From NCBI GenBank assembly GCA_904063045.1, contig CAJFCJ010000097.1, forward strand, positions 1 through 42,537: DNA of 42,537 bases. The letters run 5' to 3'. A program made the translations under genes and the position numbers. The notes under the pieces are model-generated. The model was not told where the DNA came from and did no database searches. It worked only from the letters and a program-made list of their open reading frames with translations. This DNA is from Dimorphilus gyrociliatus (lineage: Eukaryota; Animalia; Annelida). Positions 7,380-42,537 of this stretch are shown here, piece by piece (the stretch's first letter is position 1; every line of letters starts with the position of its first letter).

Positions 7380-7790
7380 TGGATTTTCTAGTAGAGTATA
7401 AAGAGGGTGATTTGTTGATATAACTCATCAGCTCCATCAAGAAGGACGACAAGATCATTTCTCTTTTCAACAAAAAAAGATTCTACTATGTTTTCAGTGA
7501 CACATGGAATATTTTTGAAATTTTGTTCAATTATTTTTTGATAGGTGTTTGAATGTTTTTTAACCTTTCTTAAAATGATAAATAAGCAGAATTTTTGAGA
7601 ATCAATAATGCAGTGGATATTTGCCCATTTGTAAGGTAGATATTTGCCTTATACACTTTTGCCTATTCCAGGTTTTCCTTGTATTGAAACCTTTTTGCAG
7701 TCTGAATAAAATATAAAAGTGGCCAATGTTGATTAAATTTTCAGAGGATAGTTCATTCTGTATTAAAAAAGTTTATATTTTTGTTTGTTT
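7380..7790 (-). pseudogene. NACHT-domain (NLR) pseudogene fragment, paralogous to 19027-22653
   Basis: It reads KKVSIQGKPGIGKSV*GKYLPYKWAN...FCLFIILRKV...IIEQNFKNI...LVVLLDGADE. This matches the Walker A and Walker B context of the intact NLR, with a stop and frameshifts. Confidence 0.85.
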
Positions 7791-15840: not shown

Positions 15841-17634
15841 ATGACACTCCTTTGGATCAGACCTGAAATTAATAGGAAACATACAAAAAAATGGTATTGT
15901 AAACCATTCATTCAATACAGTATTGAACAAAGTCTGGTTTTTTATTATTTTAAACATAGCATGTTATATAATCAAGGGAAATTATTTAGTTGGTTATTCA
16001 TTTGGTTTAACCATGTAATACATGGTTATAGTACAATTGTTATGCTTGTTAAGAAAAGTCCATTTATCAAAATGGCTTCATATACAATTGGCTTTTTATT
16101 GTTTTATATAGGATTTAATAATTTTTTAACACATGTTTTGAAAATAGAGAATTTGGAAAAATTATCTGACGATGAGAGGATTTTTCCATTGAAAAATATT
16201 ATTTTTATTATTGGATTTTGCCAAATTATAGTTGCAAGTATTGAAAAAATAGAATTTAGATTTCCTATTGAAATTCCTTCAGAATATTTTTTTGTATCAA
16301 CACTATTATATTTATTAAGGAATTGTTCAATACATTCAAATGATCAACTTATAGTCAATATTTATGGTAAAGTAATAACAATTGATTATATCCTACTAAT
16401 CATACATAATTTATATTTTATGAATAAGAAACAATTCTTTTATGGTGGAAAACTGGGACAATTCTTGTCTATGATACAATTTATAACATATCTTTTTTTG
16501 TTAATTTTTCAAATACCATTGTTAGTAGTAATTGGAATTATGAATTTAAATTATGAAATATTATTTACTTTTGTATTGAAAACTGATAGTTTCTCAATTT
16601 TTTATGAATGGTATTTCTATATTAAATCTATATATTTTGATGGAAAAGAATTGAAATATAAATTAAATTTACTTAATAAGATTTTAAGTGTTTATAATAT
16701 GAGAATTGATGATGATGATGATGATAAATCATTTCCAAATGTTATAAAATCGTTTATAAATGATATTAGTATTAATGAATTATGTTCAATTTATAATAAA
16801 TGTGAAAATATGTCAATTGATGAATTTAAGATGGAAATTGAGAAAATTGTTGAAAGGTTATTTGAGTTTAAAACTGAATCAAGTATATTTGGTATGAATA
16901 AGAAATTGGATACTGAAGAATATGTTAAAAAGTGTAACTATTGCAATCAATCTATTACTTTCTTCGATTCGGTTCAAATGGAATTTGAACATTATTCCTG
17001 CCTGAAATGTTGGAGAAAACTTATATCGAAAGGTAAAGGTCGAAGAGGTCGAACAACTTTATCATGTTTCGTTTGCTATAAGAAAGGTCAATCTTCTAAA
17101 CTAATTGAATTGTTTACTCAACATTTTTCATGTCAAAATTGCCTAAAATATTTAGCATCCTATAAATATTTTCCATGTTATTGTTGCGGAATACCAAATT
17201 ATATAATAAGATTTCAAGATGGAAATGAACAAATCAGAACTTTTTATAGTTTATTTCTTAAATTTAAAATAGATATTTTACCAGAACAATTAATGAAATC
17301 AATTATATTTGATTTTACTGAAAAAGAATTACAATCACTTTCTAACAATCCAAACCAAGAATCTACTGAAAAATTTAAAAAACAAATTTGGAGAAATGTT
17401 AAAATGGAACTTTTATGGGAAGTTCCTTATTACAGTGACCAAGATTTTATATCTATTCAAGCATTATTTCAAGAATTAAAAATGGATATTTTACCTGAAA
17501 ATGAAATGAAAACATTGGCTACTCTATTCTCCAAACTATTTTGGAAACTTATAAATGATGATTTAACAAGAGACCTTACTATTCCAATTTTTAAACGGGT
17601 TGTACAAGAAAATTCTTCTCATACTCGCCAATAA
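15841..17634 (+). CDS. Intronless multi-pass membrane protein with a Cys/His-rich tandem RING-like region (597 aa); function unknown
   Basis: It is a long clean ORF. About 5 hydrophobic segments lie in residues ~80-240. The Cys-rich region is CNYC-x13-FEHYSCLKC-x18-CFVC-x12-FTQHFSCQNC-x11-CYCC, and the C-terminus has a short internal repeat (KIDILPEQLMK / KMDILPENEMK). The start codon is uncertain. Confidence 0.7.
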   Translation: MTLLWIRPEINRKHTKKWYCKPFIQYSIEQSLVFYYFKHSMLYNQGKLFSWLFIWFNHVIHGYSTIVMLVKKSPFIKMASYTIGFLLFYIGFNNFLTHVLKIENLEKLSDDERIFPLKNIIFIIGFCQIIVASIEKIEFRFPIEIPSEYFFVSTLLYLLRNCSIHSNDQLIVNIYGKVITIDYILLIIHNLYFMNKKQFFYGGKLGQFLSMIQFITYLFLLIFQIPLLVVIGIMNLNYEILFTFVLKTDSFSIFYEWYFYIKSIYFDGKELKYKLNLLNKILSVYNMRIDDDDDDKSFPNVIKSFINDISINELCSIYNKCENMSIDEFKMEIEKIVERLFEFKTESSIFGMNKKLDTEEYVKKCNYCNQSITFFDSVQMEFEHYSCLKCWRKLISKGKGRRGRTTLSCFVCYKKGQSSKLIELFTQHFSCQNCLKYLASYKYFPCYCCGIPNYIIRFQDGNEQIRTFYSLFLKFKIDILPEQLMKSIIFDFTEKELQSLSNNPNQESTEKFKKQIWRNVKMELLWEVPYYSDQDFISIQALFQELKMDILPENEMKTLATLFSKLFWKLINDDLTRDLTIPIFKRVVQENSSHTRQ

Positions 17635-18256: not shown

Positions 18257-19026
18257 ATTTGTTATTGAAAAGGATATAACAGCTTTGATATGCATCTTTT
18301 GCTGTGTTTTTTATACCTTTATTAATTGCATAGTGGCACCATCTGTTATGGTTGAAAAATGTATTTGGTGCGAAATGGAAGTATTTCTAAAGCTCAATTA
18401 TATATCTAAAGTCTAAAAATCATTATGTTATTATTTCTAAGTGAAAAAATATAATTTATAACCATTTTCTTTTAATTTATGGTTTTTCTGGTGAGTCACA
18501 ACTAGATCAATACTGCTTCTCTATCCATAAAATATAGCAGACGAGTTTATTTGTACAGGTGTGCTGCATAGTATTAGTGCTGTTCTGTATAATAATAGTT
18601 TCATACTACTGGCCTCTATCGCTTAAAATTCCAAAAAAAGAAAGTAAGTGAATTTTTAAATGTTCTTTTATCATTTCTTATCTAGTCATTAATATTGTGT
18701 GTAAAATTTCTTGCGCATTTTAAGAATCATCATTACATTGAGAGATTGTTTAGTAGGAATCAATTTTGTGAAAACTCTAATTTAAGAAATTATCATTCAG
18801 CCTATAAGAGGCCATAACTGTTCTTTATAATCTCTTGCGTGGTTTTTAAGAATTTGCAAGTTACAACAGTACTGGTTCTCCTTGACCTTTGAACAAAGTG
18901 TTTGAAAAGCAGCAATATAAAAGTTCAAGAATTTTTAAGTAATCCAATTATGCAGTTATAAGACAAAAGACATTTTTTTTGTACAGATACCAAGATTCCA
19001 AAGGTTCTTGAAGATCATTAATCAAA

Positions 19027-22000
19027 ATGAATTCTCGGGATTGGCTATGTTTCAATTATTATATTCCAAATATTTTAATGTTATTAAACGAAACATATAA
19101 TTTTAAGAAAATTTGCATAAATTTAGTTTCAAAACAATTCATTCAAATAGAAAAGGCTAAAATTCTGGAAGAGCAGTATAAGGCAGAGAAAACTGCAGCT
19201 ACTAAAGATATAATCAAAATACTGAATGCCGGTACGTTAAAAGATGTTATTGAAATTTTAAGGGACTTGGACAACAAGTTGGCAAAATATTTAAGTGATC
19301 AAGAATTTGTATGGAAAAGGTTAATCTCTGATACAAAAGAAGAGAGGAAAAAAGATTTCACAACAATAAAACTTTTACCATTTAATAAAACTAAACAAGT
19401 TAAATTAACTGATATTTTAACAGATATTAAAATATCAAACATTTTTGAAAAACATATCTCTGACTCAGAACTTGTGAATACAGAAATTTATTATGAAAAT
19501 TTCTATGAAATATTTTATACAGATTTCAATAAGATTTTAATTCAAGGAGAACCTGGGATAGGAAAAAGTGTCCATATGAAACATTTACTCTATATGTGGG
19601 CAAATGAAAGATGGATTGCTGACCAGGAAAAATTGTGTATATTCATTATCCTCAGAAATGTGAATGGAAACAGATCAATTTATGAAGAGATATATAGACA
19701 AAATTTCAAAAATATTAATTATATAAATGAACATATTATTGAATTATTTTTTAAAGAAAAGCAAAAAGACATCATATTATTTTTAGATGGAGCAGATGAG
19801 TTTCATCATCCAACACATAAATTTAATGATATTATTGAAGGGGCAAACTGTAATATTCCAACTGCTATTTGGACAAGAAATTGGAAAGGTGAGGAAATCA
19901 TAACTACTTGTGATTATGCATTTGAATTAACAGGTTGGGGAAATGTACAAATAAAACAATTTTTTCAAAAATGTTTTCTCACTAATTCTAATAAAAAAGG
20001 GATTGAATTTCTGGAAAATGTCAAAAAACATCCAAAAATACAAAATCTATGTCAAGTACCACTTTTAGCAATGATTCTTTTTTTTATTTGGGAGGAAAAA
20101 GGTGACTTTTTAAACAAAACTCTTTTTCAAATATATGAAGATTTTGTTTGTATAATTCAAGAGAAAAATCTAGAAACCATTAATAACAATGATGTTGACA
20201 TGGAAGACATATATAAATCATGTTTTTTTAATCTTTCAACAAGTAAAATTATCCTTGACTTTTATACAGACAAAAATACAATCATGTATACAAGTTTAAA
20301 GGGAATTTTTGATGTCATTCCTGCTAAATTCAAGAAAAATGAATTACAATTCTATCATTTATCATTTCAAGAATACTTTTCAGCTAAATATCTGATAAAA
20401 GAGTTTAAGAATAAATCCAAAAAAACAATTTGGACATTGACAACTTTGTTGGATAAAGAAAAAACTTTGGATGAATTATTTAAAGAAAATAACAATATCA
20501 GGACATATAATACTTTAGATTTTGTTCAACAATATTCAAAATCAATATTTCAAAATATTCTTCTCTCATCTCAATTTGCTCAACAATTGTTCGATTGCAG
20601 TGAAACTGTACAAAATTATTTATCAAATGGTTTGGAAAGCAACCAAGAGATTAATTTAAAAAATGAAGATTTAAATGATACTATAGTTGGATTATTAATA
20701 GAAATCAATGGAAGTTGTTTATTGAATATTTCTATTCAGAACACCAAGATAAATATTACTTTTCTACTGAAACAACTTGCTTTGTACTCTCCATTGCTGG
20801 AAAAAATTGAAATAGAGAATAAAGATTTTTATTTTTCCTATCAAATGATATTTGAAGAACTGCTACCATTGATTACATCAACTAGGATTACATATTTTAT
20901 TGTCCATGATATTGAAGTTTTGGTTAGAAAAAGGAATAATAATAATAATTGTGTACCATCAAAAGAGCAAATTGAGAAATTAGAGATTTCAAATAATGAA
21001 TACAACACTGAGTGGTTGATTGAAGTTACATTTGGAAATGACCAATTCACTAGTTTAACTGATATATCATACAATTCTGAAATTTTTTACCAAAGAGCAC
21101 CATTAACATTTATTGAAAAACAAGAGTCTCTTCATGAGATTATTCTTCAGAATAAACTACTCTCTGGAAATGAAATGGAAGATCTTTTTAATATTTTAAA
21201 ATTTAAAAGGGAGCATCACAAATTTAATAAAATAGTGATACAAAATAGCTCAATAATAAATCTAAATAACCAATTTTTTAGAGAGTGTTACATTTATATA
21301 TCCAATAATTTAACAAATCAGCTACCATTCCATTCATATGATGATGACATTATGACACCAAATATTATTCAGATTAAACTTTTCAATGAAAAACTGAAAA
21401 TTTGTCTAAATTCTACAGAGGCAAATAAGAGAGTTGATGAAAAAGAGCTGATCGAATTGAATAAAAATACTATTGAATGTTTATACAACGCCTTGAAAGA
21501 GAAATTTGTTAACATGCTTTATTTTCCAATTGAATTAAATAATTTAAAATATAATACCAGTTATAGAGATATATTGACGGATCTCTTTGAAATATTGTGC
21601 CAAACACTGGAGATATTTAATATTGAACACCACACAGAGTTTGAAAATGAGCAAGGAACAATATCTCAACTTTTAACAAAATGTACCAATATAAAAACTC
21701 TATTATTTGAAAGTTATATCAAAGCTAACATTTATTTCAATTTCACATCATTTAAAGATACATTGAGAAATATCATCATTGTGGATTGCAAATTAAATAT
21801 TCAAGATTCAAAAACATTGGGTGAAAACTTACAAAAATGCTCTTTTTTAAGATATGTCAACCTATCAAAAAATAAAGATATGGGGAATGGCTTCAAAGTA
21901 ATATGTGATGGACTGAAATCTTCTTCAAAATGCTTGAAAATAATTAAACTTGGCTGCTGTGATTTTAATGATGAACTAGCTAAATGTCTAGGAGAAACAC

Positions 22001-22653
22001 TTAAACAGTGTTCAGCACTAGAAAATATTGATTTCTCAACCAATCAGCATATGGGGAATGGCTTTAAGGTGATATGTGATGGACTCAAATACTCTTCAAA
22101 CTCTTTAAAAAACATTGATTTTTCACACTGTGATTTAAATGATGAACAAGCTAAATGTCTAGGAGAAACATTTAAACTGTGTTCAGCACTAGAAAATATT
22201 CATTTGAAAGGCAATGAGAATATGGGCAATAGCTTTAAAGTGATATGTGATGGATTCAAATCTTCTAGCAGATTGCTGAAAGAAATTGATTTTAGTTTTT
22301 GCAATTTGCAAGAACAGCAAAAACAATATCTAGAGTATTGCTGTTCATTGAAAAAAATCAATTTATCTAATAATCCTGATATAGCAGTTACCTCTAAATT
22401 TAAAGAAAATAACAGTTCAGTTAATGGAGAAAGAGATGCTTATCATTCGATAAAAGAAAGTCTTCAGTGCAAAATTTGTCTTGGTAAAATGGCAAATATT
22501 TTATTATTACCATGTAATCATGTCGTTTCGTGTAAACAATGTCTTTTAAGTTTACAGAGCGCAGACTGTCCCCTATGTAGACAAAATATTAGGGGCTATG
22601 TGGTAATAATATCAGATTTAGACAATTTTGATATAAATTTTGAACAAGATTAA
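19027..22653 (+). CDS. Intronless NLR-like protein: putative death-fold N-terminus, NACHT, RI-like LRRs, C-terminal IAP-type RING (1208 aa)
   Basis: Walker A is GEPGIGKS, Walker B is ILFLDGADE, and the PLL and winged-helix FYHLSFQEYFSA motifs are present. There are about 3.5 57-aa LRR units (MGNGFKVICDGLKSSS...). The C3HC4 RING is CKIC...LPCNH...CKQC...CPLCR...I (about 22468-22608). The ~95-aa helical N-terminus is only CARD/death-like by pattern. Confidence 0.93.
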   Translation: MNSRDWLCFNYYIPNILMLLNETYNFKKICINLVSKQFIQIEKAKILEEQYKAEKTAATKDIIKILNAGTLKDVIEILRDLDNKLAKYLSDQEFVWKRLISDTKEERKKDFTTIKLLPFNKTKQVKLTDILTDIKISNIFEKHISDSELVNTEIYYENFYEIFYTDFNKILIQGEPGIGKSVHMKHLLYMWANERWIADQEKLCIFIILRNVNGNRSIYEEIYRQNFKNINYINEHIIELFFKEKQKDIILFLDGADEFHHPTHKFNDIIEGANCNIPTAIWTRNWKGEEIITTCDYAFELTGWGNVQIKQFFQKCFLTNSNKKGIEFLENVKKHPKIQNLCQVPLLAMILFFIWEEKGDFLNKTLFQIYEDFVCIIQEKNLETINNNDVDMEDIYKSCFFNLSTSKIILDFYTDKNTIMYTSLKGIFDVIPAKFKKNELQFYHLSFQEYFSAKYLIKEFKNKSKKTIWTLTTLLDKEKTLDELFKENNNIRTYNTLDFVQQYSKSIFQNILLSSQFAQQLFDCSETVQNYLSNGLESNQEINLKNEDLNDTIVGLLIEINGSCLLNISIQNTKINITFLLKQLALYSPLLEKIEIENKDFYFSYQMIFEELLPLITSTRITYFIVHDIEVLVRKRNNNNNCVPSKEQIEKLEISNNEYNTEWLIEVTFGNDQFTSLTDISYNSEIFYQRAPLTFIEKQESLHEIILQNKLLSGNEMEDLFNILKFKREHHKFNKIVIQNSSIINLNNQFFRECYIYISNNLTNQLPFHSYDDDIMTPNIIQIKLFNEKLKICLNSTEANKRVDEKELIELNKNTIECLYNALKEKFVNMLYFPIELNNLKYNTSYRDILTDLFEILCQTLEIFNIEHHTEFENEQGTISQLLTKCTNIKTLLFESYIKANIYFNFTSFKDTLRNIIIVDCKLNIQDSKTLGENLQKCSFLRYVNLSKNKDMGNGFKVICDGLKSSSKCLKIIKLGCCDFNDELAKCLGETLKQCSALENIDFSTNQHMGNGFKVICDGLKYSSNSLKNIDFSHCDLNDEQAKCLGETFKLCSALENIHLKGNENMGNSFKVICDGFKSSSRLLKEIDFSFCNLQEQQKQYLEYCCSLKKINLSNNPDIAVTSKFKENNSSVNGERDAYHSIKESLQCKICLGKMANILLLPCNHVVSCKQCLLSLQSADCPLCRQNIRGYVVIISDLDNFDINFEQD

Positions 22654-22994
22654 TGTGCACTTAGAAATATCAACATAATAATATTTAGACTTTAGATATT
22701 ATAGAACTTTAGAAAGGCTTTTATTTAGTAGAAATAGAGCCAGATTGGTAAATGATTGGAAAGGACAAATATTATATAATTAAATAGAAATTCCTACAAT
22801 TACAATACAACAAAGTACAATTAATTAAAATAAAGGATGAAATCTTCAAACATATGCATAAATGGTCAATGGAAACTGAGGTGGATACTACTTTTTATTT
22901 GACAAAACCTTAATGGCTAATGATCTTTGGTTATAAATTATTTAATCTAATGTTCAACTATTCAGCAATGATTTTACTTTCTTAACTAAAAATA

Positions 22995-23114
22995 CAGTGG
23001 TGAAAGAAATTTTTGTTTGATGGAATATTTTTTTAAAACAAGGCCATTGATTACCCTTCAACATAGCCCTTACAAAAAAATATTCCATCGAACGAAAAAT
23101 TTCTTTCACCACTG
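22995..23114. mobile_element. 120-bp Tc1/mariner-type MITE
   Basis: The ~40-bp TIR CAGTGGTGAAAGAAATTTTT(C)GTT(T/C)GATGGAATATTTTTT is near perfect and is flanked by TA on both sides. Confidence 0.92.
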
Positions 23115-23695
23115 TATATACTATGTTACTGATTCTACTGGAATGTTGAACTTCAAACAGTAAAATTGGATTAACAACTCAATTTATTCTATTCATGTGT
23201 GTCTATTACCTTCAAAACGAAATTCTTTCTTTAGATATTTTCTCAAATTATTAAAAAAAACTTTTTAATTTAGTATCTCAAAGTTTATCCTATAAAACTG
23301 GAAATTAAGTGACAGTAATAAACTACCTTTACAATAATGTTAGTTGAGTGACCATTTCTGGAAATTTTTTACATACTTATGTTGTCTGTTCTTAATTTGA
23401 ATTTTTGCCAACAAAGAAGATACCAATAATCTTTCAAGCCACATAAATAATTAAAGGCAGACTTTTACATTATGCATTACAATATTTGTGCACTTTGTGT
23501 ATTTGAGAACTTGTGAAATAATAAATGACTTTTTGTTTGAATAGATTAGGGTTAGATCTTGGGATTATGATTTGCCAATCAGGGACTGACTAACAAACCC
23601 TTAGTGCACTCACACTGTAAGCCTAGACAAAATGTATCCTGGACAGATTGTCTCTTGAGCTAGAGAAGTGATATAATTTCTTTATTGTACTAAAT

Positions 23696-28401: not shown

Positions 28402-30111
28402 TCACACACCATCATAAATTATTCTTTCTATTATAAAACAATTTTTAATTAAAATTTCCAGTCTTTTAATTTGTTCTGTAGACAATTTACAATCAGAAAA
28501 GTCAAGACACTTTAAAGTATGTGATGACTTTTGTAATCCTTCACAAATATCAAAAAAAGCATTTTTCATATTCTGATTGCCAGCTAATGTTATTGTTTTT
28601 AGTTTAAAGCAATTTTTTAACAGACTTCCTAATCTTTTTGTTTCTATTATATCAAAATTACAATTAAAAAAATCAAGATTTTTTAAAGATTGTGATGACT
28701 GTTGAAGTCCTTCACAAATGACAAAAAATCCATTTTCTATCATATCATTTTTACCTAATACTATTGTTTCTAGTTTACAACACTTTTTAAGTAGATTTCC
28801 CAAAATTTTACATTGCGCAATATCCAAATCACATCCAAACATATCAAGACTGTTTAAAGTGTTGGATGACTTTTTAAGTTCATTGCAAATGACATAAAAT
28901 CCATTTCCCATTGAGTAATTTAAACCTAAATTAACCATTTCGATTTTGCAGCAATTCTTAAAGAGATTTCCCAACATTTCACTTTGTTCTGTATTCAAAT
29001 TGCAATCATTCAAATCAAAATTATTAAAACTGTCTGATGATTTTCCAAGTCCCTCGCAAATATGGAAAAATCCATCTCTCATATTCTGATTCCGCCTTAA
29101 ACTTAGTGTCTCTATTTTAGAACAATTTTTCAAAAGATTTCCCAAATTTTTAGCTTGTTCTCTATTCAAATCACAATTTGAAAAATCAAGATTTTGTAAA
29201 ATATCTGACGATTTTAAAAGTCCTTCACATATGTCAAAAAATCCATTCTCCATATTTTCATTTTCATTTAGAATTATACTATTCACTTTAGAGCAAATTT
29301 TAAGAAAATTTCCCACCATTTCAGCTTGTGTTTTATTCAAATTACAGTAAGATAAGTCAAGACTCTCTAATGTGTTTGATGATTGTTGAAGTCCTATACA
29401 TATCTCCAAAAATCCTTGTTCCATATTGGTATTCCCACTTAAATTTATTGTTTCTAATTTTGAGCACATTTTAAGCAAACACCCCAACTTTTCAGCTTGT
29501 TTTCTATTCAAATTACAATCAGACATATCAAGACTATTTAAAGTATTTGAGGATGTTTCAAGTCCTTCACAAATATCATAAAATCCATTTTCCAACATTG
29601 TATTTCCCCATAAATTTATTGTTTCTATATTAGAACAATTTTTAAGAAGATTTCCTAATTGTCTTATTTGTGCTCTCTCTAAATTACATCCAAGTAAATC
29701 TAGAGTATTTAAAGTGTTTGATGACTTTTCAAGTCCTTTACAAATATCATAAAATCCATTTCCCATAAATTGATTTCTCCATAGAATTATTCTTTCTACG
29801 TTGGAACAATTGTTAAGAAGATTTCCCAAAACTTTAGCTTGTTCACTTTTCAAATTACAATCAGAAAAGTCAAGAATCTCTAAATTGTTTGATGATTTTT
29901 CAAGTCCTTCACAAATATTATAAAATCCATTTCCCATTGTTTTATTGCCTTGTAAAATTACTGTTTCTATCTTAGAGCAGTTTTTAAGTGAATCTCCCAA
30001 CTTATTACATTCTAGGCCACCTAAACGACAAAAAGAAAATTCAATGCTTTTTAAAGTATTTGATGATTTTTCAATTCCTTCACATATATCAGAAAATAAT
30101 CCATTTGCCAT
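28402..30111 (-). CDS. LRR-only ORF (569 aa): ten tandem 57-aa ribonuclease-inhibitor-like units (171-bp DNA repeat, ~20 LRRs); possibly the 3' part of a truncated NLR
   Basis: The unit consensus is MxNGFxxICEGLxxSSNTLxxLDxSxCNLxxxQxxxLGNLLKNCSKIETIxLxxNxx, in lengths 58 + 8x57 + 55 = 569. There are in-frame stops immediately upstream, no signal peptide and no NACHT nearby. Confidence 0.85.
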   Translation of the reverse strand: MANGLFSDICEGIEKSSNTLKSIEFSFCRLGGLECNKLGDSLKNCSKIETVILQGNKTMGNGFYNICEGLEKSSNNLEILDFSDCNLKSEQAKVLGNLLNNCSNVERIILWRNQFMGNGFYDICKGLEKSSNTLNTLDLLGCNLERAQIRQLGNLLKNCSNIETINLWGNTMLENGFYDICEGLETSSNTLNSLDMSDCNLNRKQAEKLGCLLKMCSKLETINLSGNTNMEQGFLEICIGLQQSSNTLESLDLSYCNLNKTQAEMVGNFLKICSKVNSIILNENENMENGFFDICEGLLKSSDILQNLDFSNCDLNREQAKNLGNLLKNCSKIETLSLRRNQNMRDGFFHICEGLGKSSDSFNNFDLNDCNLNTEQSEMLGNLFKNCCKIEMVNLGLNYSMGNGFYVICNELKKSSNTLNSLDMFGCDLDIAQCKILGNLLKKCCKLETIVLGKNDMIENGFFVICEGLQQSSQSLKNLDFFNCNFDIIETKRLGSLLKNCFKLKTITLAGNQNMKNAFFDICEGLQKSSHTLKCLDFSDCKLSTEQIKRLEILIKNCFIIERIIYDGV

Positions 30112-33033: not shown

Positions 33034-36000
33034 ATGGCATCATTTTACTCTTCTGTTATCATTTTATTAATGACTATACAGTTGACAAGTTGCCTGGATT
33101 ATGATGAAACATTTAATGGTAAAGCTTTGACTATTCCTTCAGGATATCATAGAATTACAGGTGCTATTGTAAAACCATCATCACTGACTGTTGAACCAGG
33201 AGCACATATTACATTTTCTTCTCAATTCAATAAAATTATAATAGAAAATGGCGATGTGAAAATGAATGGATTAGAAAATCAACAAATTCGTATGAATGTT
33301 GAAGAAACACCAATAAAAGATGATTTTATTTTTGATTTTTCTGGAAACAGTAAGTAAAAAGTTAACATTGTTTTTTATTTCTTAACAAAATATTTAAAAT
33401 CAGAGGTTTTTCGGTTAAAATTCAAAGTTAATGATGAATACCTACTTCTATGCCATACTTTGAGCTTAAGACAAAGAGTAATACAAGTAATATTCCATTA
33501 CTAATAACTAAAAATGCTGGAAAGATTACAATTTAATTTTCATTTTTGTTTTCTTAGCTTGTAAAGAATGCTCTTGGAGTTAAATCTCTCATTGCGTATC
33601 ATTCAAATGCAATAGGAACTTGCCAAGAAATTCAATGTTCTACCAGTACAGTTGATATCAGGAATTGTAGGAGATATATAAGTAAAATTTTATTTAATTG
33701 AATGAATCAAACAATCAATTAAATCCATCAATCTCAACAGCAAATGCTCAAGTTAAGAGTCTTATCGTATTAAATTTCCAGCCAATTAACGATGGATTAA
33801 ACAACGGAATTCTGGTAAGAAATTCAAATAATGTGGCTATATCGAATGTAGAAAGTGAAAAGGCAGCATTCATCTTTGAAGATTCAAATATTGACCTATT
33901 TAGGTATGTATTATCAATTTAGTGAGCGAAAATATAGGTTATTGGGGTTTTTTTGTTTTTTTTCTTATACAGTAATATACAAATTCGAAATTCAACATCT
34001 AGAGATGCTGTTACAATGATAAATGATAAAAAGTCATATAATTACAATCTAAATTCAATTACACTGGAAAATAATTGGCAGGGTGTTTATATTCAATCCA
34101 AAAATAGATTTATGATTAACAATATAAAAACAGAAAGTATGAATTACCTAAATAAATAGATAACAAATTATCTTATCTCATATAACAGATAATAAGATTT
34201 CTATCATAAGAGTTGAAGAGCCACCTTCATCATTGATATACTCAGATGTATATATAGAAGATTTAACATGCAATATTTGCAATGACACTGTTCTCTCATA
34301 TCCAATCCATTCAAGGTCATATACTACAAAGCAGATAAGTAAAGTATGAAAAAGTTTTGAATAGATTTTTTTCTTAAAATAATAAAACTATAAAAAAAAA
34401 TATTTTTCAAGACGTTTATTGCTCGAGAAAATGAAGTTTTGGATATTCGATATCTTTGCTTCAATTCGGAAACTGAATGCAAAATTTATGATGGAAATGA
34501 ATTACTTTTTCGCAATATGAGATCATCATGTAAATCATTTATATCTCATAGTCGAAATGTTACACTTCAATGTACAATAACGCAAACATACTCGACCTTG
34601 AGAATCAATTCAATTTGGCAAGGTTTGCCATTATTTAATATATATTTATGAATACTACTCTTGTAAACATTGTGTTTCTTCATCATCTCTAATTTAGATA
34701 AAGACATCAGCATAATTTCTAATCTTCATTCATCTTTTGATCAGGGTACTCCTATAGCATTGTACTCTTCTCAAAACTTTAAGTTAGACAATATGAGATT
34801 GAGGAATTGCTTCATCAATGTCAAAATGCTATTTAGAACATTTACAATTGAATCCAGTTACTTTGAAGAATCCAGAATACAAATAACATCTTCTCAGTCA
34901 GCACCAACAAATTATAAAATTTCAATACGAAATAATACATTTTATTCAAAGAGTTCACAATATTCGTCTATATACAATACTGGTCTTCTCAAGATATCAA
35001 CAAGAGCTGAAATTGTGAATAATACATTTTTAGAAGTATGTTTTCTTTTTTTTTTTGGGTTTTTTATATTAATTATTAAATATTTTTATAACTCAGAAAC
35101 ATCACCTGCAAATATCTGGGATTGGAACTCATTTAAAAATTGAGAATAATTATTTGTCTAAAATAACCCTATCAATTAGTGATATCTATTTTACTGAGAT
35201 AAGAAATAATGAGTTTAATACTCATTATAATGGATATAATCATTTTATGAACATTTATACAAGCGATATAAAAAGAGGAAGTTATCTAATTGAATGTAAT
35301 AAAATAATTAATATATCTACAAGATTCCTAAGGTTTTATGAGCCTAGTGACCTACATTCGTATTTGGTTATCAGAAATAATACATTCATAAATGGCAATT
35401 ATGATACATTAACATCTTCAAGATCTGAGTTAATTGCAATATCTAACGTATTCAGATCTCAAGATATCTCTTTAAATTATCATTTATTTACTGATAATAA
35501 ATTTTTGAATATAAATCTTTGGTCATTTTTGACTGTTAATAATTTGCATTTGCAATTAATTTTGAATAATAATCAATTCATTAATTGTTCAGCAATAAGG
35601 AGTTTTATAAGAATTAATGATCAGCTGAGATATCTGAAAAATCAAATTGGAACAGTGAGTGTAAAAAATAATATTATTCAAAATTCTACTGCAATGAATG
35701 CTTTTGAAATTGTTGTTGGTAATTCAAATCTTAATTTTACTAATAATCTAGTTCAAAATTGTCAAATATATGGTGCAGTAGTGCAATTTAGATTTCTCCA
35801 TTCTGTTGATACATATCATCATATCATTGATAATCATTTTTTAAATAATATTGTCCATTCTACATTTAAACTGGGAGGAGAAATATTTCCATTGATATCA
35901 AGGAATATTATTGATAATGAAATGAGTATTTATGAGATTGAATGCAATTTTCTTTGTGGAACAAACAATGCTGATCATAATTGTCAATTGAATATGACTT

Positions 36001-39000
36001 ATAATTATATCAACACCAAAAATCCTTATACAAAACTATATGATAGAAATGAAAATGGTCTATTGGTAAAAGTTTTATTATCTCCAAGCTATTCGGATCC
36101 AGAATTGACAACTCTTAAGTATTTTGAAGAAGAAGAAAAAAATTCCAATATTCTTTGTGGATATCTTAATGGAAATCAAGAGTTGAGTGGCAATATTCTC
36201 ATTAAAGATACAACAGTAATTAATGGAGATTTAACAATATTACGTCACAATACCTTAATGATGTTTAATGCTGGAAAACAATTAATAATAACTGGATCTC
36301 TTTTCATTGATAATTCCAATGCAGAAATGGTTTATTTTAGTACTGTGAAACAGGAAAAAACAAAGTATATTCTAGATTCTAATGGCAACTTAAAAATTTC
36401 CGAGAATGATGAATTGAGAAATGTTAAATTCAATTTAACAGCAACAGCAATTAGTAATCAACAACTTTTTCATTTAAATAAAATGGTTTGTCAACATTTC
36501 AATCAACTCATAGATCCAGGCAAGTATACAATGGGATAATATATTTCAATCAATCAATCAATCAATCATAAGTATTAAACTGCCTGAATTACAGAATCAA
36601 GGCCATATGTAAGAACAAACACTGCTCTAACAACTGAATGGATACTTGATTGTTATAATGTTACACAATTAGCTCAGTGTAAAAATGTTTCCCAATCAAA
36701 TGCAGAAGTAATAATTACCTTTAGCTGCTCAACTTTAAAATTAAATGCAGCTATAGTAAGTTTAGAGGGCGCTACAAGCTATATAAAGAATAGTGTCTTC
36801 AATGGAGTTACTCTAAGTTTAATGTCTGCACAGGAAATCTTTGTAACAGAGTCCTATTTCTCATCATCTCAAATTGGTTTACAAATTGGTTCATTTAATA
36901 AACTTGACAATCTAGTGATATCCAATGTTTTGATAGAATCTATAAAAGAGGCTGGACTTGATTTAATTGGTTTATTCCATAGAATTTCAATTGAAAATAG
37001 CAGATTTAATGAAAATTTAAATTCAATTAAATTAACACAATTGAATTATCAACTCAAAATTGAAAAACTCCCTGTTGAATATTCAATCTATTCTCCAATT
37101 ACTTTTTGTACAATTGGAAAAGTTTTTCATTTGAAACATAAAATGCTATGGTTTGATTCTAATTGGTTTGACTTTTTTCGGGATGGATGCACTGCAAGTT
37201 TAATAATTCCATATGGTTTTATTTTTAAAATAAAGGTGTTATACGGATATATTTCAAATCAAGATATACAAATTTTCCCAAAGAATGGATCACCTTATTA
37301 TCTTCACTATTATAATCAAGTAAATATGAAAAAACTTGTAAACTATAACTTGAATACAAATTATACTTTTTTTGAACAGGATGAAATGTACATATATGAA
37401 AATGACATGAGAATACAATTGAATGGATATTATTACCCTCAACGAATGAAGATTCTCTTCTCTTTCATTGAAAGACCAGGTTCAGTTAATTTTATAATTG
37501 GAATGAAATAGGCTGATTTTTTTTTTTAATTCAGTAACCCTATGTACATTTGAGAAAAGTATATGTGATTGGATAATAAAATATTCGGCATCCAACTATT
37601 TACGAATCAATTTAAAAGAGACAAATTGTTTTGGAAGTCACAATAGAGTTCCACAGTTTTTTCAACATGCCATACTCTTCAAACATACATGCTGCCCAAT
37701 TCACACAGCTACTATTGTTCACAAAAAGCTTACCTATAACAAAAATTTCTGTTTTTTTCGATATTATTTTAATGGAAATGTGGCTTCAATGCAAATTATA
37801 GTTAAAAATAGTATAACACAATATGTTCAGCATGTTCCTGAAAGAATTACTCATTGGGGATTGGTAGATATTCCTATTCATAAAATGAGATATACAGAAT
37901 TTTCAATTGAAATTACAATTAATTTTGACGACTGTTTTGTATTTGCAAATCCAGAATTCGTTTATTGTGACAATGTTGACTACAGCATGGAATATCATAC
38001 TTCAAATAATTCATTTACTAAAGGTAAGGGTACTGATTTGAAGATTAATTATCAAACTTTGCAACATAAAAGTCATTTTCATTTTGAAAATTTAAATTTC
38101 TTATCAAACAAAAACTCTATAGACATTAAAACTAAACGCTCAACAATTTATATGAAAAATTTAAGCGTTAAAAATTCAATAAATACTGCAATAAATCTGC
38201 AATATTCACAAAATTTTTATATGATTGATGACAATTTGAAAGTATCATTAATTCAAAGTATTTTCTACAAAAATATTAATGGCACTTATCTCTTTCAAGT
38301 TGATAATATCAACAAACATGACCTTGGAATTTTTGTTAAGAAATCTATTTTTGAAAAATGTTCTAGTAATCTTCATTTAATAAAGATAACTAATGCTCAT
38401 TTGGATATGGATAAAAGTACATTATACAGAAATTATGCAAAAAAAGATTTACTCTTTCATTCATTAAGTGGAAATAATGGAATATTGACAATTACTCATA
38501 GTGTATTCAATGAAAATAGCATTTTGGAGAAGAAAGAATCAAAGATTATTTCTACATCTGCTCAAAGTATTAAAATTACTCAAAATGTTTTTAATGATGA
38601 TAAAGCTACTTTTCAAGTTGCTTGTCTTAATTTTTCAACTGCATCTTATTTAAATGATTGCACTAGAAATTGGTGGGGAAACACTGATTTATCAAATATA
38701 CATTTAAGAATTTATGATGGAAGACATGTTTCTAATCTAAAAAATCTTGATTATTCTAAAAGTCTTATCAATATCCCTGAAAATAATTACATCAGTTCAT
38801 TTTGTGGTTTAAATGGATGGAAAGATATTGAAAATTCTTGCTATTACTTTCATTTTGGACCATTAAACTATCAGAATGCTTCTCGATACTGTATCAATCA
38901 ATTTTCATATCTTTTATCAAAGCATCAATTAGAAATGAATGATGACATTAGACAAATACTTTCATATAGAGATTTCAATAATCAATTAAAGAGTACTGAT

Positions 39001-42000
39001 GTATGGGTATTAACAAATTCTCAACAGTTACAACAACAATCCAAAAATCATCATCCTTTTAAAAATGATATTATAAAACCTTTTGTTTGTAGGGAATTTA
39101 ATACATTTGCTTGTGTTAACAACTGTTTTAAAAATGGAATTTGTTTTAATGGAATATGCATTTGTGATTCTGGTTGGACTAAAATTGATTGTTCTCAATT
39201 TACATGTAAAAGTGTTGGATATTGTAGCAATCATGGCACATGTGTTGGTCCTAATTTTTGTCAATGTGATGCAGGATGGTATGGTAGAAGATGTTCAATA
39301 TCAAAATGTCCACGATATACAACTTGTAAACAATGCACACAAAAGGATGGTTGTGGATGGTGTGATACTACTCAAAGATGTATGCCCGGAACACCAAGTT
39401 TACCTTATAGATCATGTCCTGACTGGTTTTATTGGAATTGTCTAAGTGTAAAACCAAACTCTTGCTCCAATCAAATATTATCATTCAATTGTGAAAAACA
39501 TTATTGTTCTAATACTGCTGAAAAGGTATGTCAACAATGTATTGACATTCTGAATTGTTATCAAAGAACAAAGACTGGATGTAGAATTTGGAATGAACAG
39601 AAATGTCAAGATGGTTTTCCACATCCAGACTTGACCTCTGAGCAAAGATTTAATGACATTCAATTCAAAGACAACATTATTCAAATTCCAGATTCTTCAA
39701 CATTATATCAATGTGAAAATGATGAGAGATTTCACGATGATTTAAACAATGAACATGAAATATTTATAATAGAAGGAAGAAATAATACAGTCAACACTCC
39801 TGGAAATATTATAATAAGTAGAAAAAATATTGGAGTTCATCATAAGATCTTGAATAGTATGAAAGTTTTATCCAATTTTGAAATAATGGTTGTACATGAA
39901 ATAAATCCATTAGATATATTTAAATATGCTCACTTGAAAACAAATGGTAAATTTGATAATATTAAGGATGATAATATTATGAACTTGGCTCCATCCAGTG
40001 ATGAATTGTCAAGATTTCTTCAAAATTCAAATCAGCAGAGGAAGATAATTGATGATGATAAGGAAATTAATATAAAATGTTTAGGAGAGGAGTATCAGTA
40101 CAAAGGTCAATCTGTTTGGTCTTATCATATTATTCAAAAACAATTAAATCAATATGATAAAAAAGATATTGTCATTGTCAAAAATACTTTGGGTTTCCTT
40201 GAAAAAGTTACCAGCTCTTTTCAAACAATTGATAAAGATGTGTTCATAAAATCAACATTATTAGACTGTTCAAGTCATAATTTAAAAAATGAAGAATTTG
40301 ACAAAATACCAATTTATTCACCTCAATTATACTGTAGAGGAGAAAATATTCATCAGAGTCTATACTACTCACAAACTGATGATATTGTTGACATTGATAA
40401 AATCATTATTGGCCGGAAAGCATCTACTTCACTTGGTTATGTAATAAACACAAAGTCTTTGTTGAATGATTGGATAATGATAGAACTAATCAATTTAGGA
40501 TCATTGAACAATCTTATGGATGGCACTGATGTAAATTATAATGAGATTATAAAAAAAACTAATTCATTTGCAACAAATTCTGAAAAACTAGAACTTGCAA
40601 TTCAAGAGAATTTACCATCAGTTAAACTAAATGTAAGTACTTGATGAAATTACAAAAGATCAATAATAAAGAAAAATAGCTAACAAGTCTTTTAAATGTT
40701 CTTTTTTATCAGAATGAAAGGGCTAAGGTTTCAATTGTATCAAAGCATGCTTCTGCAATTCAAACAACATTGGAATTAAAAGTTTTTCCTCATTATGGTA
40801 TTAAATATTTAAAGACTTCTATGAATATAAATCATGATATTCACATCAATTATGATATTTCTGTTGAAAAAAAAACACCAATATTTGAGTATGAGCCTTT
40901 ACTTTTGAAAAAAGGAGGAAATTATCAATTTAGATTTGATATTAATGGTTTTAATTTTCTTGGAATAGTATCTACATCAGAGTTATCAATTGGATCATTA
41001 ACTCTTCAATCAAGAGAAAATTTTGTCTTTCAGTCTAATAACTGTGTACTTTCAAGTGTATCATATTGTTCCCTTTTGTTCCATGACAAAACTAAATTAG
41101 ACAATCATAGGACAAGAACTGAAAAGAAAAAGAATAATTGTAAATCAGCATTGAATGGAATAGGATATGGAAAAGTAACTATCCCATTTAGGTCTATTTT
41201 TTCTCTAAAATGGCCCCTTTATAAAAATCAGAAAAAATCTAAAATATTTAATGAAAACTTGAAATATTTTAGTAGAAAAGGTTCATGGAAATCTGTAAAT
41301 AACTGGCTTGCAAGTATAGTATCAAAATAATTATTATGAATATTTTACCTATAATTAATATTATGTAAACAGGTATAAACTTTCCAAAAATTTCTACAAG
41401 AACAAGCAATCAACTATTTATGAACATGGTCATAAATAAAGAAATAGAAATCAAGACAGGATACTCTGATGGAAACATTTGTTATGACACAAAAGCAAAT
41501 ACTGGTAGTGTTGTTTTGAGAGATGTCACAATTAGAGGGAAAATAGGATATTCTATTTTTGAAAAAGATATATTTTGTATCAATTGCATGAAAAAAGATT
41601 TTGTTCTATTTAGGTTGATTTTTTTGACATTACACTATTATATAAAAATGATTTTAAACATTTACAAAATTTCAGTCAATGTGGCAGTTATGAACGTAGA
41701 TTTAGAAGAAAGTATGACATTTGTAAATGTGGTCAATATGGAAATGACATCACAAATGGACTCTATAATAAGAAAAATAAACAATGTATGTGCCCTTGTA
41801 GATGTGAAAATGGAAAAAGGGAACATAGCTATATGTTTGAATCTGGAACTTGCCTATGTTGTCCTGATGGATCTGCAAAAAGTATTTCTGATATACATAC
41901 CTCTTGTCCGTGTACATGTCCTGATGGAACCTTATCAAGACTGATATTTGGGTTGTGTTCTTGCCAACCATGTCCAAAATGTTCCATAGATGGAGCTGAA

Positions 42001-42537
42001 AAAAGGTTGCCATCTGGTGAATGTATTTGTAGAAATCAATGTGGTATAAACAGTATCTGTGTACCTGAAAGGGAAGGAAAAGAGTGTGAACAACCAGTTT
42101 GCAGTCCTTCAAAAAATTGCAACAACCATGGTATTTGTAAGCCAGTTAGCAATTGTAAAGCAATATGCCAATGTTTTAGGCAATGGATGGGCATTGCCTG
42201 TGAAATTCGTAATCCAAGAGTAGCTTGGGGTGATCCCCATTTAGAAACACTAGATGGTAGAGCATTTGATTACTTTGGTATTGGTCAATTTTGGGGTTGT
42301 ATTTCACCATCCCTATCATATCAATATCGATTCTATGCTTATAAAACAACATCATTTATTGGAGCAATTGCTATTAAAATTGGAAATTCATCTATTTTAA
42401 CAGTGACTACTAAATTAAATGTTACAGCTGATGATTTTCCTTCTCTTAGATTGGATGGATCTCTTATTGACAACTTGAAAAGTAATCATTCATATAAGTT
42501 TGATAATGATACAATTCGTATAGACATTTCACCCAAG
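33034..42537 (+). CDS. Large secreted/extracellular mosaic protein, 3'-incomplete: signal peptide, parallel beta-helix-like repeats, two SRCR-like, CUB-like, MAM, C-type lectin, EGFs, PSI, Cys-rich/EGF, vWD
   Basis: The phase-consistent exon model is 33034-33349, 33404-33486, 33558-33681, 33741-33903, 33973-34136, 34189-34343, 34412-34622, 34698-35035, 35097-36519, 36595-37479, 37535-40632, 40713-41313, 41373-41613, 41676->42537. Motifs are LTVEPGAHITF (bark-beetle-like N-terminus), CTFEKSICDW (MAM), CGLNGWKDIENSCYYF (CTL), CFKNGICFNGICICDSGWTKIDC (EGF), CKQCTQKDGCGWC (PSI) and AWGDPHLETLDG (vWD). Confidence 0.88.

Follow-up and report, generated by a model that had tools for sequence, protein, structure and literature searches.

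The 42,537-nt stretch of Dimorphilus gyrociliatus DNA analysed here (hereafter the window) carries on its forward strand an intact ORF that begins with ATG and encodes 1208 aa followed by a stop codon, uninterrupted by introns. Because GC content of the window is only ~28%, a 3.6-kb open frame is far longer than chance would produce. An in-frame TGA (19009-19011) lies shortly 5' of the ATG, the open frame amounting to 1213 aa compared with 1208 aa for the ORF. The predicted protein resembles a NOD-like receptor (NLR) with a RING at its extreme C terminus, and the features of the locus are collected in Table 1.

Table 1. Features of the NLR-RING locus, in positions of the window
Feature	Position	Strand	Basis or remarks
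5' UTR exon 1	18477..18643	+	3' end set by splice joint; 5' end uncertain
5' UTR exon 2	18725..18922	+	Flanked by introns 18644-18724 (81 nt) and 18923-18986 (64 nt)
Start of exon 3, final 40 nt of the 5' UTR	18987..19026	+	X1 and X2 contigs begin exactly at 18987
Complete CDS, no intron	19027..22653	+	ORF call, Pfam, contigs
Predicted CARD-like death fold, residues 1-92; six helices, helix 1 broken	19027..19302	+	AF2 and VIA-align
Pre-NACHT linker, residues 93-169 (VWK..L..DTKEERRKDF..LLPF), conserved	19303..19533	+	Paralogue alignment
NACHT NTPase with helical/winged-helix extension, residues 170 to ~548	19534..20670	+	Pfam, motifs
Middle region, residues 549-904	20671..21738	+	No Pfam family; kept in close paralogues, colinear alignment
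Ribonuclease-inhibitor (RI)-like LRRs, residues ~905-1119	21739..22383	+	Pfam LRR_6, repeat cores, AF2
Fusion junction and flexible linker, residues 1120-1129	22384..22413	+	AF2, match to neighbour's intron, contigs
IAP-type RING module, residues 1130-1208: pre-RING helix, C3HC4 core (22468-22578), tail IRGYVVIISDLDNFDINFEQD	22414..22650	+	
3' flank outside the protein, ~165 nt absent from the neighbouring RING copy	22655..22819	+	Contig ends, comparison with neighbour

Gene structure and transcription

Two introns interrupt the 5' UTR. The first joint (18643>18725, GT..AG) was present in an X1 contig and the second (18922>18987, GT..AG) in contigs of both X1 and X2; GTAAGT stands at 18644, X1 depth starts in the bin 18477-18653, and the acceptor and polypyrimidine tracts can be read in the sequence. 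Since these spliced exons lead into the ORF, transcription of the gene is the simplest reading. The GT..AG joints of the 5' UTR were confined to two transcriptome-sized runs (X1 and X2), whose RNA nature is deduced from the joints themselves, the kinds of the runs not being on record. The ORF had been described as single-exon in a preliminary description of this DNA, which is correct for the coding part but not for the gene.

The junction between LRRs and RING sits between two repeated sequence families, where assemblers err, and an assembly chimera or two genes taken for one could in principle account for the fusion. Contigs from X1 (22148-22711) and X2 (22149-22716), however, run without a single difference through the junction and on past the stop codon, as does an X4 contig (22232-22515) across the junction; together the three represent two studies, and neither a stop nor a frame change occurs at the junction. 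The artefact explanation is largely refuted by these RNA-like contigs, which bear out the contiguity that had been proposed, and we regard its probability as close to negligible. Among the contigs aligned, none joined the 5' UTR to the RING in one piece.

Domains of the predicted protein

An AF2 model of the N terminus, built from an alignment of 16 paralogues, had pLDDT values of 90-97 for residues 1-90. In a wide search with VIA-align, this model matched the Apaf-1 CARD with a Z score of 10.4 (rmsd 2.3, 85 residues aligned), and almost all of the top 30 fold matches were CARDs, including those of CED-3/CED-4, caspase-9, caspase-1, NLRC4, NOD1, and cIAP1. CARDs also ranked at the top of a Foldseek search, for which the query carried a disordered tail, with E-values of 0.6 or worse and none significant. 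The Pfam scan matched no family in this region, and the assignment was made by fold: as modelled, the N terminus is a CARD-like death fold. The pre-NACHT linker that follows was modelled with low confidence (pLDDT 42-59).

The NACHT domain was recognized by Pfam over residues 170-265 (E 5.7e-9 to 8.6e-10; 36.4-39.1 bits, cut-off 26.7). Walker A (GEPGIGKS, 19546-19569, residues 174-181) and Walker B (ILFLDGADE, 19774-19800, residues 250-258) are intact, a WTR motif is located at 19870-19878, and there is a weak match to NLRC4_HD2 at residues 444-489. In the C-terminal piece, LRR_6 was matched with an E-value of 2.3e-6 (27.7 bits, cut-off 23.4). Approximately seven RI-like repeats are arranged in 57-residue double units, with cores at residues 938, 995, 1052, and 1105, and AF2 models them as a confident solenoid (pLDDT 92-98). 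The last unit is shortened and breaks off after ...INLSNNPDI; it is followed by a linker of ~12 residues (1118-1129) with pLDDT below 50.

The RING was matched to zf-C3HC4_3 at residues 1145-1189 when the whole protein was scanned (E 3.4e-13, 49.6 bits) and again when the RING was scanned by itself (E 7.9e-15, 54.8 bits; cut-off 27 in both cases). The C3HC4 motif CKIC...LPCNH...CKQC...CPLCR is complete (residues 1148-1184), with all eight zinc ligands present (C1148, C1151, C1163, H1165, C1169, C1172, C1181, and C1184), and AF2 modelled the module at pLDDT 76-88. Its nearest solved structures are cIAP2 (E 2.9e-11), cIAP1, and XIAP (range 2.9e-11 to 1e-7), and, of 1.84 billion representatives, BIR-RING IAPs gave the best long matches. 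CKIC, CPLC, and R1185 align with CKVC, CPIC, and R of cIAP2, and the Ile, Pro, and Arg also match cIAP1; we take the hydrophobic residue after Cys1, the Pro of CPxC, and the Arg after the last Cys to be E2 contact or activation residues. Four claims of the preliminary description therefore stand: the likely death-fold N terminus (pLDDT above 90), the order NACHT, LRRs, RING within the ORF (all three Pfam families above cut-off), the complete C3HC4 motif, and the IAP type of the RING. The Pfam scan found no BIR domain in the protein, BIR loci being located at other places in the genome; because it has no BIR domain, the protein is, on its predicted domain content, not an IAP.

The overall plan recalls NOD1/NOD2 and NLRC4, which have in common with the Dimorphilus protein an N-terminal CARD-type fold, a NACHT with Walker A/B, and C-terminal RI-like LRRs. 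Identity to these proteins is very low, the CARD is undetectable by Pfam, and a RING has been added after the LRRs; no orthology is implied. From cIAP1, cIAP2, and XIAP (BIRC2/3/4), with which it shares the RING, the pre-RING helix, and an I-(K/R)-G-x-V segment after the last Cys, the protein differs in having an NLR core, no BIR, and a tail 13 residues longer (SDLDNFDINFEQD). A CARD is likewise paired with a C-terminal RING in cIAP1.

That animal NLRs normally end in their sensor repeats, as the preliminary description put it, is an overstatement. NLRP1 carries FIIND-CARD. Teleost NLR-C proteins have a C-terminal B30.2 domain after the repeats (PMC12436146). These NLR-C/NLR-B30.2 proteins and NLRP1 resemble the Dimorphilus protein in having an extra domain after the LRRs and in belonging to expanded lineage-specific families, but their extra domain is B30.2/PRY-SPRY or FIIND-CARD, whereas here it is a RING, and Pfam gave no match to SPRY or PRY in the window protein. 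The fused form is expanded in fish (NLR-C), whereas in Dimorphilus it is a single gene.

Origin of the RING and its genomic context

At least 88 NACHT paralogue matches were found in the D. gyrociliatus genome (identity 75-28%), and the window gene alone among them has a RING. Its closest paralogues are 60-64% identical over residues 1-1120 and then continue with more LRRs in place of the RING, homology stopping at approximately residues 1116-1125. A NACHT fragment also lies at 7415-7714 of the window.

The RING part belongs to a family of terminal exons with ~65 matches in the genome. The hallmark of this family, the tail IRGYVxIKSDLDNLNLxF behind a RING and 45-70% identity across ~80 residues, is present in the window gene, and the best family match is 70% identical in amino acids (C97:46249-46431). 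At the DNA level, a copy 24 kb downstream (C97:46254-46427 and 47385-47458), which is split by an insertion, shares 86-91% identity with the RING part. Given this identity and the size of the terminal-exon family, the sequence comparison indicates that the fusion is a capture of a multicopy IAP-derived RING terminal exon by an NLR gene, the parent family of the exon resting on two examples. The linker DNA gave a colinear weak match to the intron end of the neighbouring copy, equalled in 27 of 2000 shuffles; in that copy an intron end and acceptor stand before the RING exon, and the linker probably retains a remnant of both that is now read through. Beyond the stop codon, homology with the neighbour picks up again at 22820-22857. 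Loose contig ends were seen at 22654-22660, 22786-22790, and 22816-22822, and a very high-copy repeat (depth bin 22725-22901, summed contig depth up to 81,873 in X4) partly overlaps the 22655-22819 segment and extends beyond 22819.

When the 88 NACHT matches were crossed with the 65 RING matches, the window gene was the sole pair within 10 kb on the same strand; in the next-nearest pair, on C100, the RING lies 10.5 kb past the end of the ORF. The idea that RING exons are the usual 3' ends of other NLR genes was rejected on this cross-tabulation, and they are not the rule at the ends of LRR-only genes, for which inspection by eye gave one possible case (C105). An upstream ORF of 597 aa (15841-17634) was considered as the original host of the RING exon and dismissed, since its few paralogues, on C90, C77, C206, and C43, are not beside RING exons. 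An apparent RING in a 1145-aa frame (C196:11517-11660) was discarded, because near-identical ORFs of ~1080-1095 aa occur there in three frames and were taken as a run of N. On C226 (4447-6903, minus strand), a RING and NLR-type LRR share a single open frame of 841 aa that has no NACHT, in the order RING then LRR.

Word searches did not find the protein in public protein sets (14 matches, mostly Dimorphilus itself) and did not return the other close paralogues or any long protein (664-2114 aa) carrying this RING module. The public genome annotation omits the window gene and at least its closest paralogue. Literature searches for a NACHT + RING architecture returned nothing relevant, an Atlas search with the LRR and RING part gave weak leads only (at most 0.77), and a language-model search placed NLRC4 clusters first (0.93). 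In these searches, the NACHT-LRR-RING arrangement was found in one gene of this genome and nowhere else, and it appears to be a variant of the animal NLR architecture. With one such gene in the genome and none found elsewhere, any selection for the fusion would be conjectural.

Between the RING and its broken neighbour, dN/dS is 0.57 over 78 codons with a dS of ~0.23, which indicates mild constraint only. These values are consistent with a young neutral chimera, in which the NLR part works like its paralogues and the in-frame RING is a recent passenger without a selected role. Such a history would also fit a sole NACHT-RING gene that is missing from public protein sets, in surroundings where broken copies and insertions abound (the split neighbouring RING, the NACHT fragment, and the repeat past the stop). 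We give it real weight but think it unlikely: the zinc ligands, the residues of E2-contact type, and the tail motif of the RING family are all kept, the ORF has stayed intact over 3.6 kb at 28% GC, and the gene is transcribed with a spliced UTR. The independent recurrence of a RING with NLR-type LRR on C226 argues against pure accident.

Possible roles of the terminal RING

The reading that we favour, at a confidence a little short of even, is that the locus encodes a transcribed, lineage-specific NLR (CARD-like, NACHT, LRR, RING) that arose by exon capture and acts as an oligomerisation-switched ligase. A member of the large family of single-exon NLRs, one with its LRR array shortened, was joined in frame to a copy of the RING terminal exon. 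The LRR and NACHT would keep the protein inactive until nucleotide-dependent oligomerisation is triggered by a ligand or danger signal. That oligomerisation would gather the CARD-like domains, which could recruit CARD partners, and would also gather the RINGs, each on ~12 flexible residues. IAP-type RINGs are activated by dimerisation, and, as they work as dimers, this proximity would be expected to switch on E2~ubiquitin discharge. The sensor might then ubiquitinate itself, its bound ligand, or the partners it has recruited. Signalling by vertebrate NOD1 and NOD2 requires that XIAP and cIAP1/2 first ubiquitinate the adaptor (the NOD-RIPK2-XIAP/cIAP link); the net effect here would be to place the NLR-to-IAP/XIAP step of NOD signalling within one polypeptide. 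That the RING acts as an E3, and that this is coupled to oligomerisation of the NLR, we infer by analogy. In IAPs, dimerisation and contact with E2~Ub involve the extreme C terminus; the tail of the Dimorphilus RING extends 13 residues past the end point of IAP RINGs, an observation counted against the mechanism. A RING homodimer prediction scored 0.27, compared with a mark of 0.32, and speaks neither for nor against a dimer.

A broader proposition, possible but doubtful, is that the protein represents an animal "sensor-ligase" in which NLR oligomerisation dimerises the receptor's own RINGs, turning sensing into a ubiquitin signal without a separate XIAP- or cIAP-like partner, and that the gene is a Rosetta-stone record of coupling between NLRs and IAP-type ligases in spiralians. 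A CARD-like domain, a NACHT-LRR switch, and an IAP-type RING are combined in one polypeptide, whereas vertebrates use separate ligases. An active RING would make the protein a minimal natural model of receptor oligomerisation switching on a dimeric RING, and would supply evolutionary evidence, independent of vertebrates, that NLRs and IAPs are linked. The locus also offers a clean, datable case of a fast-evolving immune-receptor family gaining an output domain by way of a proliferating terminal exon.

Ligase activity could instead be guided by the LRRs in the style of LRSAM1, with the LRRs binding a microbial or host protein, the RING ubiquitinating the bound target, and the NACHT serving mainly as a scaffold. 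LRSAM1 recognises bacteria through its LRRs and ubiquitinates through its RING. It likewise ends in a zf-C3HC4_3 RING preceded by LRRs, but it has no NACHT or CARD, its LRRs are of another type, and its SAM and coiled-coil regions were not found in the Dimorphilus protein. The AF2 model, in which the RING adjoins the C terminus of the LRRs, and the NACHT-free frame on C226 both agree with such a role; we nevertheless consider it highly improbable, since the order on C226 is the reverse of that in the window gene and the intact Walker A/B suggest a working switch. It is, moreover, compatible with the oligomerisation-switched ligase.

Alternatively, the RING could be an integrated decoy that mimics the ~65 RING loci, such that a pathogen effector attacking those RINGs would set off the receptor, in the way of plant NLR-IDs and NLRP1 of mammals. 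Pathogens classically target IAPs; the RING family is IAP-like, the domain comes from a large family in the same genome (~65 host copies), and it is placed at the receptor end on a flexible linker. A pure bait, however, would have no need of the catalytic-type residues, all of which are retained, no effector is known, and the fusion is a single copy rather than one of a series of NLR-IDs; we therefore judge a decoy role, which is hypothetical here, to be rather improbable. Plant NLR-IDs are comparable as NLRs with an acquired domain, common in host proteins, at the receptor end, but they belong to another kingdom and are built on NB-ARC, whereas the Dimorphilus protein is built on NACHT.

Gene structure and transcription

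The NLR-RING gene is an uninterrupted ORF of 1208 aa (window 19027-22653, +). Chance stops are common at the G+C content of the window sequence (~28%), so the open frame is taken as non-accidental. Pfam and direct motif reading bear out the preliminary description of a single ORF with NACHT motifs, RI-like LRRs, and a complete C3HC4 RING. The NLR-RING protein has the testable features of NLR membership and would work like a CARD-NACHT-LRR receptor.

Features of the NLR-RING gene and protein, its paralogues, and related RING exons (residues, NLR-RING protein numbering; splice joints, window positions; C-numbered entries, contigs of the same assembly)
Feature	Position	Strand	Evidence
Splice joint, GT..AG	18643>18725		X1 contigs
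Splice joint, GT..AG	18922>18987		X1 and X2 contigs
NACHT	residues 170-265		Pfam, E 5.7e-9, above cut-off
Walker A GEPGIGKS	residues 174-181		direct reading
Walker B ILFLDGADE	residues 250-258		direct reading
LRR_6, RI-type	C-terminal quarter		Pfam, E 2.3e-6, piece scanned alone
LRR cores (n=4, 57-residue spacing)	residues 938, 995, 1052, 1105		direct reading
LRR solenoid	to ~residue 1112		AF2 of residues 880-1208, pLDDT 92-98
Disordered stretch	residues 1118-1129		AF2, pLDDT <50
Long pre-RING helix	residues 1129-1146		AF2
zf-C3HC4_3	residues 1145-1189		Pfam, E 3.4e-13 whole protein; 7.9e-15 alone
RING zinc ligands, 8/8	C1148, C1151, C1163, H1165, C1169, C1172, C1181, C1184		direct reading
Folded RING			AF2, pLDDT 76-88
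Closest NLR paralogue	C112:63094-67344	+	
Close NLR paralogue	C100:95261-99559	-	
Close NLR paralogue	C305:10629-15098	+	
Close NLR paralogue	C95:57569-62767	-	
Close NLR paralogue	on C77		
RING exon examples	C100:121466-121717; C66:55513-55773; C153:11417-11656; C91:26109-26360		

Contigs from four public sequencing runs were placed on window 18300-23600. Two of these runs, X1 (2017, study P1) and X2 (2020, study P2), are transcriptome-sized; both contain spliced contigs and an exact contig start at 18987. The contigs of a third run, X4, are genome-sized and continuous across 18300-19566. In the sequence itself, a GTAAGT donor is read at 18644 and acceptors with a polypyrimidine tract and AG at 18724 and 18986; the ATG at 19027 is preceded by an in-frame TGA (19009-19011). 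As the public records do not state the kind of these runs, the origin of X1 and X2 is deduced from the splice joints; the two are most simply read as RNA-derived, in which case two short introns (81 and 64 nt) interrupt the 5'UTR and the coding sequence occupies a single exon. Run contigs give neither strand nor expression level, and no single contig from the four runs joined the 5'UTR to the RING.

The LRR-RING junction was crossed with 0 differences by contigs of X1 (22148-22711), X2 (22149-22716), and X4 (22232-22515), and those of X1 and X2 also crossed the stop codon. This excludes an assembly chimera at the junction, a doubt raised in the preliminary description; transcripts ending before the RING, its second doubt, were not seen, as no joint among the contigs of the four runs in 18300-23600 skipped the RING or ended before it. 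That the fusion is an artefact is extremely improbable.

Predicted N-terminal fold and tethered RING

Residues 1-158 had no Pfam match. In an AF2 model built from an alignment of 16 paralogues, residues 1-90 were predicted at pLDDT 90-97, and the N terminus forms six helices, the first of which is broken. Foldseek ranked CARDs at the top for this model, without significance. An exhaustive VIA-align search placed the Apaf-1 CARD first (Z 10.4, rmsd 2.3, 85 residues), followed by the CARDs of CED-3/CED-4, MDA5, caspase-9, caspase-1, Dark/Dronc, NLRC4, cIAP1, and NOD1 and then by other death-fold domains. By score alone, a Z of ~10 is below the safe level for a helical bundle; we accept residues 1-90 as a predicted CARD-like death fold because nearly all entries in the list are CARDs or other death folds, which supports on fold evidence the N terminus initially proposed.

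At the other end, the modeled solenoid, disordered stretch, and folded RING indicate that the RING forms its own domain, joined to the LRRs by a short flexible linker. The solved structures that best match its sequence are cIAP2 (E 2.9e-11), cIAP1, XIAP, and BIRC7, with alignment from the pre-RING helix to I-R-G-Y-V past the last Cys. In a search of 1.84 billion representatives with the last 87 residues, BIR-RING IAPs were the best long matches, among them an abalone BIRC7-like protein. On both counts, the earlier designation as an IAP-style RING is correct; the NLR-RING protein is not itself an IAP, having no BIR domain. The RING also retains Ile directly after Cys1, Pro in CPLC, and Arg directly after the final Cys. 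Its tail runs 13 residues past the end point of IAP RINGs and could alter dimer geometry. MAFFT paired SDLDNLNLNF, the acidic RING-family tail, with the NLR LRR core CSALENIDFS (A3, columns 300-340), a likeness that may be chance.

Paralogues and origin of the fusion

At least 88 genome matches to the NACHT region were found, many inside long single open frames. Five close paralogues (on C112, C100, C305, C95, and C77) are 54-64% identical and colinear from residue 1 to ~1116-1125; beyond this point they add further 57-residue LRR units and then end without a RING. Four of them (all but that on C77) are single open frames of 1417-1733 aa, and several stop abruptly inside an LRR unit. In a cross-tabulation of all NACHT and RING matches, the NLR-RING gene was the sole NACHT with a same-strand RING within 10 kb downstream.

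In a word search of 5.8 billion proteins, the close relatives were only NACHT proteins of Dimorphilus gyrociliatus at 33-38% identity, with nothing above 38%, and none of the eight database relatives had a RING. Contig C38 of the same 77.9-Mb assembly encodes one of these relatives, DgyrCDS14440, at 100% identity, which identifies the genome as D. gyrociliatus. The four single-frame paralogues were absent from the word-search results, and neither the NLR-RING protein nor its closest paralogue had an exact sequence among ~15 billion public proteins. In the sense of exact look-up and word search, the NLR-RING gene is unannotated.

The RING belongs both to Pfam zf-C3HC4_3 and to a Dimorphilus-specific exon family. 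Elsewhere in the genome, ~65 matches to the last 87 residues were found, mostly on small contigs and mostly in 85-140-aa open frames that start behind a polypyrimidine tract and share the tail IRGYVxIKSDLDNLNLxF, which marks them as a multicopy family of terminal exons. Few members of this family appear in public protein sets. With ~65 other loci carrying the domain, the fused RING might be an integrated decoy of it, which we consider unlikely.

The best RING match lies 24 kb downstream of the NLR-RING gene on the same strand (C97:46249-47458, 4 kb past the window end; 70% amino-acid identity). Nucleotide identity is 86% between window 22416-22589 and C97:46254-46427 and 91% between window 22581-22654 and C97:47385-47458. 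This neighbouring copy is split after CPLCRQN by a ~957 bp insertion flanked by a 9-bp duplication, ACAAAATAT. Weak colinear similarity (score reached by 27/2000 shuffles) continues ~34 nt further upstream into the end of its intron and its acceptor, TTTCAG|TG compared with TTTAAAG in the window. The junction (residues 1120-1129) is disordered linker in the AF2 model. The picture from these alignments is of an NLR copy, its LRR array cut short, whose frame appears to continue across what was once the end of an intron and into a captured RING exon. For the pair of RING copies, dS is ~0.23 and dN/dS 0.57 (small sample); the former indicates that the capture is not brand new, and constraint on the copies is only mild in this small sample. 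The fusion might also be a neutral young chimera, which is somewhat unlikely. Just past the stop codon is a very high-copy short repeat (window 22725-22901, +; summed contig depth up to ~82,000 in the DNA run); its bin only partly overlaps a stretch of ~165 nt (22655-22819) missing from the flank of the neighbouring copy.

Parent genes of the RING exons were examined at two loci. A long frame 0.8 kb upstream of the neighbouring copy carries teneurin-type EGF and cadherin domains; its end, a hydrophobic segment and then RAKKGKG, resembles a membrane anchor. On C100, a PAN domain is found among the frames upstream of the RING exon. These features suggest that at both loci the RING exon is the cytoplasmic tail of a surface protein. 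Pairing of NLR-type LRRs with a RING recurs in the genome: in an 841-aa open frame (C226:4447-6903, -), a zf-C3HC4_3 RING precedes NLR-type LRRs. Six RING matches cluster at C5:2539428-2589449; their frames measure 359-550 aa, and 494-550 aa in five cases.

Possible activity and comparison with other NLRs

The protein contains all domains for a switchable NLR plus an IAP-type RING that is structurally plausible and has its zinc ligands intact. Dimerization of IAP, MDM2, and RNF4-type RINGs activates E2~ubiquitin. From established knowledge of NLRs and RINGs, we tentatively favor oligomerization-driven RING activation: NACHT oligomerization would cluster the CARD-like domains and tethered RINGs, RING dimerization would activate E2~ubiquitin, and ubiquitin would then be passed to the receptor itself, to CARD partners it recruits, or to a ligand bound by the LRRs. 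A ligase that selects substrates through its LRRs, as LRSAM1 does, is compatible with such activation but, as an explanation of its own, quite improbable.

The initial premise that animal NLRs end in their sensor repeats is too absolute. NLRP1 also has an extra domain after its LRRs, but this is a FIIND-CARD rather than the RING of the NLR-RING protein. The extra domain after the LRRs of teleost NLR-C proteins is B30.2, again not a RING (PMC12436146). Extra domains at this position are therefore already known in animals; a RING there was not found in our protein or literature searches. No long protein with this RING module appeared in the word search, and no NACHT was present in the best 150 of 3225 RING matches. 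The NLR repertoire papers and other literature searched likewise described no RING after NLR LRRs; such an arrangement may be rare in Metazoa.

ORFs are sparse in the window, which gave no tRNA or Rfam match; EGF, cadherin, and PSI domains among the neighbours of the gene mark the window as animal DNA. The same cluster contains a pseudogene remnant, a NACHT fragment (window 7415-7714, -) that runs from Walker A to Walker B, shares 53% identity with the NLR, and is interrupted by an internal stop. An intact 569-aa ORF (28402-30111, -) is built entirely of ~10 RI-like LRR units of 57 residues, 35-42% identical to the LRRs of the NLR-RING protein, with no NACHT; such LRR-only frames are numerous in the genome (141 matches). 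From 34670 to 42537 (+), and on to C97:45424, a very large gene or run of long exons encodes teneurin-type EGF, PSI, and cadherin domains and ends in a transmembrane-like segment.
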